64,000 bases of DNA from Piromyces finnis finn (GCA_002104945.1 MCFH01000072.1:169646-233645); one strand, 5' to 3'; positions 53,963-56,900 are shown, counted from the stretch's first letter. The notes: generated by a model from the sequence alone, not told the origin. A program made the numbers and translations.

Positions 53963-56900
53963 ATGGATGATGAATGGGTACCCAATTCAAATGATGAATT
54001 TGAGGAAGAGGAAGAGGAAGTTGATATTGATGAAGCTAAAAAAGAATTAATTGAAAAAGTTCAACGTATAAAAAAAAATCTTAGCGAAAATTATAATATT
54101 GATATTTCGAAATCAAATTTAAAATATATGAAAAATGATATTAAATTAAAAAGTTATCAAGTAATGTATTATGTATTAAATAAGAAAATATTCCTTTTTT
54201 TTAAAAAAAAATAATAATAATAAATAAAATTTTTTTAACTAATAAGTAATATATAATAACAATTATAGGTAGATGGTGTAAATTGGATTTTGAATTTATA
54301 TAAAAGCAATATAAATGGAATTTTAGGTATAATATCATGAAAATTATATATTATTATTGTAATATATTATTAATTAAAAGTATAAAAAGAAATTAAAAAT
54401 TAATATTCCTGGTATTTTTTTAAATAAATATATAAACTAAAATTATAGCTGATGATATGGGTAATATATTTTATATATATATATTAAAAAAAAAAAAGTA
54501 ATTTTTAAAATTTAATTTTAAAATCTAATTTCAATTCTAATATTATAATTATCATTATTCAAAAGGTTTGGGTAAAACTATTCAAACAATTTGTGCATTA
54601 GCATATATAAAACAATATGAAAATAGGAATTCTTTACCATTCCATATCCTTTTTAAATAATAAATTTATTATTTGATAATAATTTGAAATTGAATTTCAA
54701 AAAAAAAAAGTATTTATGGTTCTTAATTGAGTATAATTTTAATGTTATTAATATACACTTGTTGTAATTCCATTGAGTATATACAATAATTGGATTGAAG
54801 AAGTAGAGAAATTTAGTAAATTAACTGTATTTCAATTCCATGGTTATAGAGAAAAAAGAAATGAATTAAAAGAGTATATTACTGAACATGTAATATAAAT
54901 TTATAATATAATTATAAAAAATTCCATAATTTTAAATTATCAAATTCTATTATAGGGAATAAAAGAAGATATATGTTTGATAACTTATGAAACAGCCTTA
55001 AAGGTTATCTATTATTATTATTATTATTATTATTATTATTATTATTATTATTATTATTATTATTATTATTATTATTATTATTATTATTATTATTATTATT
55101 ATTATTATTATTATTATTATTATTATTATTATTATTATTATTATTATTATTATTATTATTATTATTATTATTATTATTAATTATCAAATTTATTCATATA
55201 TTTATTTATATTTATTTATTTATTTATTTATTTATTTATTTATTTATTTATTTATTTATTTATTTATTATTACTTTGTAATAGGAATGCGAATTTTTTGA
55301 AAGCTTTAAATTTGATTTTTTAATTGTGGATGTAAATATACATAAATATATCAATAATTATTTAATTATTTGTATTATTTTCCTTTATACATATATAATT
55401 ATAATTTCATAATTAATAATTTATTATTAATAATATAATAATGCATATAGGAAGCTCATAGAATTAAAAATAAAAAAACAATATTATATGAAAAATTAAA
55501 TGAGTATAAATTCAACCATAATTTATTTTTAACAGGTATATTATATAATATAATTAATAATTAATAATTTCATTTTATTTCTATTATCATTGCTTATATA
55601 TCATTTAAAAAAAAAAGGTACACCAATACAAAATAATATAGGTGAATTACATTCATTATTACAATTTCAAAATCCAGAAGTATTTAATATGAGAGAAAAA
55701 ACATTTTCAGCTTTTTTCCCATCCTTATCTGATACTGTTGAATTACAATCAATTATTAAGCCGTAATTATTTTTCCTTATTTTATATTAAATTTTAATTA
55801 TTTTTTATTAGTATATCAAATTAAAAATAAAGAAATATAAATGTATATTAGATTTATTTTACGAAGGGAAAAAGATAAGGTATTAAAACTTCCTCCAATA
55901 AGTGAAGCTATTATTTATACAGGTAATCATTTATTAAATGTAAAAGTAAATGCGAAATTATATAAATAATGAATATTAAATTTTTCTTTTTTTAAATAGA
56001 ATTATCAGAATTACAGAAAAGGTTATATAGAGCAATTTTATTAAAAGATATTACGGCATTCAGCAATCAGAAAAATACTCGATTATTAAACAGTAATAAT
56101 TATTAAAAATTATAATATAATAATATTATTGTGTAATATACAACTAAAAATTTAATAGTCAATATATTATTAATATTAACATTAAACATTATAATTTCAA
56201 AAATATCAAATAGTATATGCTCAATTAAAAAAATGTGCAAATCATCCATATTTGTTTGGTAATATTTAATATAAATTTTTTTTTTCATAAAAAAAATATA
56301 CAGCTGATGAAAACAATATTAATATTATAGATGACATTGAACCTGAACCATATGAAATGGGAGAACATTTAATTCAAGCTTCTGGAAAATTTGTTATTAT
56401 TGATGGGCTATTAAAATATATAAAGAAAAATAATCATAAAGTTTTGGTATATAATTTTATAATTTTTATTATTTATTGTTAATATTTATATAATTATTAA
56501 TATATATAATATATTATATTTTGTAATTTCAATATATAATTAAAATGCATTCTTCTTAACATAAAATTTAAAGATATTTTCTCAAATGACTAGAGTATTG
56601 GATATATTACAAGACTATTTAGATTATATGGATTATTCATATGAAAGATTAGATGGATCTGTTAAGGGTGAAGATCGTTTTAAAGCTGTAAAAGATTTTA
56701 TGGACCAAAAAAAGAATATTTTTATTTTTTTATTAAGTACAAGGGCTGGGGGTTTAGGTTTAAACCTGACAGCAGGTAAAAAATAAATAAATAAATAAAA
56801 TGATTAATAAATAATTGATATAATTTAAATAGATATATCATAATTAAAATTGGAATTAATAATAATATATATATATCTAAATAATTTATATAAAAAAAAT

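Follow-up and report, generated by a model that had tools for sequence, protein, structure and literature searches.

The CHD1L/ALC1-Like Gene of the Window

The window considered here, a 64-kb stretch of Piromyces finnis DNA read on one strand, harbors a gene for an SNF2-type ATPase, of which the first 17 exons can be chained and translated, followed by macro-like and BRCT-like coding sequence (Table 1). The surrounding sequence is low in G+C, at about 15-29% across the window in 2-kb steps and 14.6% over 54001-56000. Pieces of the exon chain are matched by the Pfam families SNF2-rel_dom and Helicase_C, and among solved structures (PDB) the helicase-C exon finds human CHD1L as its best match at 86 bits, with Ino80 as the next family at 69 bits. 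The nearest full-length homologs are 40-49% identical, and chytrid homologs from Obelidium, Irineochytrium, and Chytriomyces bear the name CHD1L. Downstream of the ATPase part, a tblastn search with a fish-like CHD1L transcript protein recovered the macro motif at 61% identity over 18 amino acids, as well as a 40-amino-acid stretch at 40% identity (E 1.6e-7); Pfam Macro gave no match on the short exon pieces. The assignment of the gene to CHD1L, made in the initial annotation, is sound in light of the PDB match, the chytrid CHD1L homologs, the downstream macro motif and the weak BRCT match. A protein that ranked by score as a close relative (P0002) was rejected as INO80/SWR1-like, with two helicase-C copies. 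Placement of the short exon fragments on a full-length homolog with MAFFT proved unreliable, and those alignments were not used.

The exon chain includes a micro-exon of only 12 nt at 54449-54460 (CTGATGATATGG, encoding the ADDM of GILADDMGLGKT), with GT-AG introns on both sides; it is identical in the orthologous contig L001 (798-809; see below), and an equivalent 12-nt micro-exon encoding ADEM is present in the chytrid Obelidium (L008). Intron 6 (280 nt) contains, within 55010-55275, an (ATT)n repeat of about 170 nt followed by (ATTT)n, and the orthologous intron of L001 is 102 nt long and has no such repeat. In intron 12, a second in-frame AG (56302-56303) precedes the modeled acceptor by 27 nt (window 56302-56330); judging from the sequence, alternative 3' splicing at this AG, which would lengthen the protein by nine residues, is possible, and it is the shorter form that agrees with L001 and with human CHD1L.

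Table 1. Features of the CHD1L/ALC1-like gene and of its fourth intron, in window coordinates.
Feature	Position	Strand	Description
CHD1L/ALC1-like gene, first 17 exons, SNF2 ATPase part	53963..57715	+	650 aa without stop; exon chain translated
Exon 4	54566..54643	+	Encodes Walker A/motif I (GLGKT); ends in phase 1; L001 counterpart 92% identical (protein)
AT-AC intron (intron 4), proposed U12-type	54644..54758	+	115 nt, phase 1; frame and orthologous AT-AC intron L001:1012-1168
5' splice site ATATCCTTTT	54644..54653	+	U12 consensus /ATATCCTTT; 10/10 bases as in L001
Branch candidate 1, TTCTTAAT	54720..54727	+	A at 54726, 32 nt before acceptor
Branch candidate 2, TTTTAAT	54737..54743	+	A at 54742, 16 nt before acceptor; putative
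3' splice site TATACAC, terminal AC	54752..54758	+	Identical 7 bases in L001 and L005
Exon 5	54759..54889	+	Encodes motif Ia (LVVIPLS); 72-77% identical in L001/L005
Macro-like exons	about 58733-59510	+	12-residue macro motif found
BRCT-like last exon	59830-60615	+	Weak BRCT match

Borders of the Fourth Intron

The initial annotation proposed that the SNF2 domain of this gene is interrupted by an AT-AC intron, and the reading-frame observations on which this was based are borne out. Read onward, the frame of exon 4 reaches a TAA at 54658-54660. No GT occurs between 54600 and that stop, the last one being at 54593, with GC at 54595 and 54601. The AG at 54730-54731, if used as an acceptor, leads into an in-frame TAA at 54734, and a second in-frame stop follows at 54749. 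Cutting at C|ATATCCTTTT and at TACAC|TT opens the frame into SNF2 motif Ia, joining ...NSLPF to LVV... and giving the spacing of motif I to motif Ia without a stop. All GT, GC, and AT donors in the region were enumerated against all AG and AC acceptors. The sole canonical pair that is in frame and free of stops (GT 54572 to AG 54800) deletes both motif I and motif Ia, and the full enumeration contained no GT/GC-AG pair that keeps the frame and both motifs. Since SNF2-rel_dom positions 28-48 fall in exon 4 and positions 56-95 in exon 5, the two exons are adjacent in the domain, and in about 70 homologs the stretch GLGKT...(G)PFLVVxPLS runs uninterrupted over the same region. The protein is restored by the borders 54644/54758 and by no others.

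A gene model confined to GT-AG introns cannot give an intact ATPase at this locus, and automatic annotations therefore probably render CHD1L as a truncated or split gene. A profile built from Obelidium CHD1L and four window exons (158 residues), run against proteins of 550-1750 residues, had among its best 120 matches chytrid and animal CHD1L, with no CHD1L protein from Neocallimastigomycota and none marked as the window's own. Public gut-fungal CHD1L models may be missing, split, or truncated.

The terminal dinucleotides of the intron form an unmixed AT-AC pair (AT at 54644-54645, AC at 54757-54758), with the qualification that borders shifted by one base (CA...CA) give the identical mRNA, so that AT-AC and CA-CA are inseparable by sequence or by mRNA. 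The remaining 15 introns checked in the gene are all GT-AG and measure 66-280 nt. The donor was described in the initial annotation as a textbook U12-type 5' splice site; it agrees with the U12 consensus at nine of nine positions and contains the extended /RTATCCTT. Taken alone this motif proves nothing, as the window has 12 copies of RTATCCTT where 8.8 are expected, which is no enrichment. Among the 12 sites, only that at 54644 stands at the required exon end with a U12-like branch motif no more than 400 nt downstream, and the other 11 were rejected as implausible U12 donors.

Conservation in Gut-Fungal Relatives

Orthologous sequence came from gut-metagenome contigs (JGI, ENA) reached by way of the helicase-C exon and designated L001-L006. 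L001-L004 and L006 belong to one organism, and L005 to a close relative whose contig starts inside intron 4. All 16 introns of L001-L004 lie at the positions of the window introns, with identical exon lengths, and each of the 17 exons has an ungapped counterpart of equal length in L001. In that contig 15 introns are GT-AG, and intron 4 reads ATATCCTTTT...TATACAC, 157 nt long and in the same phase, with its first 10 and last 7 bases equal to those of the window. When the positions flanking the terminal trinucleotides are compared between the window and L001, intron 4 is identical at seven of seven donor positions (+4 to +10) and at six of seven acceptor positions (-10 to -4), as against means of 3.1/7 and 2.7/7 for the 15 GT-AG introns, in which the maxima are 6/7 and 5/7, respectively. 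Both the donor and the acceptor identity of intron 4 are the highest of the 16 orthologous intron pairs.

This identity is to be read against the divergence of the coding sequence. Over 531 codons of the spliced CDS, dS between the window and L001 is 0.85 and dN is 0.12, for a dN/dS of 0.14, and neither sequence contains a stop; on account of this ratio and the open frame, the gene is under selection as spliced at 54644/54758. By this comparison of sequences, the extended splice sites have been kept against heavy neutral divergence, with synonymous sites near saturation. What marks an intron as U12-type is its 5' splice site together with its branch site, and splice-site conservation at a dS of 0.85 is the behavior expected of such an intron (PMC3584512).

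The same comparison bears on the notion that the gene is broken, whether as a pseudogene or through an assembly error, with a decayed insertion that only looks like an intron. An in-frame stop five codons past the proposed donor, together with the lack of any full-length Neocallimastigomycota CHD1L among the best 120 database matches, would fit such a history, but the coding sequence evolves under the constraint just described and is stop-free in both species once the intron is removed. Moreover, the same structure recurs in independent JGI and ENA metagenome assemblies, and the flanking exons are present in transcript contigs. We accordingly regard a broken gene as extremely improbable.

Taking together the donor match, the restored spacing of motifs I and Ia, and a splice-site conservation that ranks first among 16 introns, we consider it very likely that 54644-54758 is a U12-type AT-AC spliceosomal intron in the CHD1L/ALC1 ortholog of a gut fungus (Neocallimastigomycota), as the initial annotation had proposed.

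Further searches for relatives were of limited yield. In the collection metagenome_contigs, a three-sequence alignment search confirmed nothing, and no sequence matched an exact degenerate DNA pattern representing the beginning of exon 5; this collection evidently lacks the samples from which L001-L006 derive. A search for homologous proteins with exon 5 gave no candidate, and the same search with the helicase-C exon added a single usable contig, L012, from an organism other than a gut fungus.

Comparison of L005:1-172 with L001:1012-1168 reveals that the two organisms are 97.6% identical over 2.8 kb, yet the 3' two-thirds of the intron and exon 5 diverge sharply. Intron 4 is in this pair a local hotspot of change, while the acceptor TATACAC stays fixed.

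Transcript Evidence

Transcript contigs were available from four runs of the same organism (X1-X4), drawn from three studies. The share of sampled 31-mers of 54540-54900 found in them is 0.47 for each of X1-X3 and 0.34 for X4, where 0.45 is expected from exons 4 and 5 alone, 0.89 with the intron retained, and 1.0 from DNA. As the observed share fits 0.45 and not 0.89, the intron is absent from the transcript contigs, this being a measure of shared words and not of a junction. For a query comprising the intron and 30 nt on each side, in which all words overlap the intron, the only match listed was a DNA run; the search mode is not directed at RNA, which makes this weak evidence.

A rival reading is removal of the intron at other non-canonical borders, or alternative splicing whose main product differs, and several nearby AT-AC or GT-AC pairs are open as well; the pair 54639/54756, for example, would yield ...SLPLVVIPLS. 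Nevertheless, a consensus donor and the conserved PF-LVV spacing occur together at 54644/54758 alone, L001 has identical borders, phase, and exon lengths, and the GT-AG alternative comes at the cost of motifs I and Ia. Use of other borders is in our estimation highly improbable, and the AT-AC borders at 54644/54758 are retained in what follows.

Minor Splicing in Anaerobic Gut Fungi

The Dikarya have lost minor splicing. Among the early-diverging fungi, Piromyces finnis and Neocallimastix californiae have been reported to possess both minor introns and minor snRNAs (Larue and Roy, 2023, NAR, PMC10639083); that study scored annotated introns for a consensus 5' splice site and for the branch site, and its calls also drew on the presence of minor snRNAs. 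The window intron belongs to the same lineage and the same class as the Neocallimastigomycetes minor introns of that study, and a genome running a minor spliceosome, as this one presumably does, would agree with what is reported there for the group (PMC10639083). Minor splicing in gut fungi being already published, the intron described here is a further example and not a discovery; as a conserved substrate, it adds to the evidence for the retention of minor splicing in anaerobic gut fungi. Our literature search found no further paper on minor splicing in these fungi beyond Larue and Roy (2023). Within the 64-kb window itself, Rfam searches at the gathering threshold and at E<=1 gave no match of any kind, minor snRNAs included.

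Which spliceosome removes the intron we infer from the character of its signals. In the mechanism we propose, the extended donor ATATCCTTT would be read by U11 and then by U6atac. The TTCTTAAT-like element would in turn be read by U12. The transcript would then be cut at C|AT...AC|TT in phase 1, joining exon 4 with its Walker A sequence GLGKT to exon 5 with motif Ia, LVVIPLS. Were the intron left in place, the ATPase would be truncated five codons on.

The most pertinent alternative is that the major (U1/U2) spliceosome excises the AT-AC intron. Introns outside the U12 class can also have AT-AC ends, as a small divergent subclass is U2-spliced (Wu and Krainer, 1997, as cited in PMC3584512). 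Moreover, the better branch candidate lies at a U2-like distance from the acceptor (32-103 nt in the window and its relatives), its CTTAAT fits the loose U2 branch motif yUnAy, and the AT at donor positions +3/+4 occurs in GT donors of this gene too. Against this, the CCTTT at donor positions +5 to +9 equals the U12 consensus and occurs in none of the gene's 15 U2 donors, where GTAA or GTAT is followed by A/T-rich sequence, and the two Cs of the donor have been kept across a dS of 0.85 in a very AT-rich intron context. The lineage is, furthermore, one for which minor snRNAs and minor introns are reported (PMC10639083). Insofar as the AT-AC introns of the major spliceosome are described through that citation of Wu and Krainer (1997), they share the terminal dinucleotides of the window intron but have donors of the U2 consensus, whereas the window donor is U12 at every position. 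Removal by the major spliceosome is therefore improbable, and we continue to treat the intron as a substrate of the minor spliceosome.

The Branch Site

The branch site can be assigned only tentatively. The initial annotation had pointed to TTCTTAAT, about 32 nt upstream of the acceptor, as resembling a U12 branch site; the motif and its distance are as described, and it is a candidate branch site, 9-mers that match equally well arising by chance in these AT-rich introns. Relative to the consensus TCCTTAAC it differs at two positions, each a C-to-T change that would leave G-U pairing with U12 intact, and the block TTCTTAATT is common to the window, L001, and L005. The sequence TTCTTAAT occurs 11 times in 128 kb (both strands), from which the chance of finding it within a given 115-nt stretch is about 0.01-0.02. 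When introns are matched to TTCCTTRAY, the candidates are not separable from chance 9-mers in sequence so rich in A and T.

The distance to the acceptor is unusual for a minor intron. The optimum between the U12 branch site and the acceptor is 11-13 nt (PMC3584512), and for TTCTTAAT the interval between the putative branch adenosine and the acceptor is 32 nt in the window and 58 and 103 nt in the relatives. The searchable text of PMC10639083 does not discuss a branch-to-acceptor distance like that of this intron. The second candidate, TTTTAAT, is closer, and its pairing with U12 would involve G-U wobbles; L001 shares the surrounding ATTTTAATG, there at 35 nt from the acceptor. In each of the window, L001, and L005, weak pyrimidine-A motifs also occur about 9 nt before the acceptor. 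A hairpin that shortens the gap between branch site and acceptor was considered and dropped, as the sequence between them, when folded, was no more structured than shuffled controls (z -1.4 to +0.8). No polypyrimidine tract precedes 54758, an absence that does not discriminate between intron types because the AT-rich GT-AG introns of the gene mostly lack one too.

The pattern of a distal TTCTTAAT and a fixed TATACAC is seen for this intron in three taxa. One tentative and, in our view, rather doubtful reading is that the gut-fungal minor spliceosome has lost the tight spacing of branch site and acceptor, such that TTCTTAAT may lie from 30 to more than 100 nt upstream, drifting with AT-rich insertions, and TATACAC would mark the acceptor instead. 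If TTCTTAAT is the true branch site, it contradicts the distance rule established in animals.

Elsewhere in the gene, a near-perfect U12 branch motif (TTCTTAAC) is found at 56553-56560, 14 nt before the AG of the GT-AG intron 13 (donor GTATATAATT); it is probably there by chance, as it is not conserved in L001.

Intron Position Across CHD1L Genes

No intron was found at the fungal site in CHD1L genes of Obelidium (L008) and Irineochytrium (L009), in L010 and L011, in L013 (a 21-kb gene of 34% G+C), or in the intronless gene of L014. The initial annotation had raised the prospect of a homologous minor intron in animal CHD1L, and this was not upheld in medaka (Oryzias melastigma, L015), whose CHD1L likewise has no intron at the fungal site.

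Vertebrate CHD1L does have a minor intron, at another position. In human CHD1L, a U12 intron is already known near the 3' end of the gene (Niemela et al., 2014, PMC4066798). In agreement with this, a medaka U12 intron at L015:20034-20127 (ATATCCTTTC...TCTTTAAC...AC) interrupts the C-terminal BRCT region at ARYLIT|YDGDEE; with its branch A 11 nt before the AC, it serves as a textbook control. The vertebrate and fungal genes thus share family and intron class but differ in the position of the intron, and the two U12 introns are not homologous, because the site in the window that matches the vertebrate one (HIFA|YDG) falls within the last exon, which no intron interrupts.

With U12 introns at different positions, and a U2-type intron at the fungal site elsewhere, CHD1L offers a small case for the study of minor-intron gain, loss, and type conversion. 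The U2-type intron was found in L012, a JGI metagenome contig (42% G+C) from a eukaryote, in a gene with SNF2 and BRCT regions. It spans 3744-3818 and reads GTACGT...CTAAC...CAG, and it falls at the same codon and in the same phase 1 as the window intron, four residues before the P of PLS (SPC|LIVAPLS vs. LPF|LVVIPLS). Unlike the AT-AC intron of the window, it carries the signals of the major spliceosome. On comparison of the two sequences, the shared site may reflect either an old intron position at which the type has changed or parallel gains.
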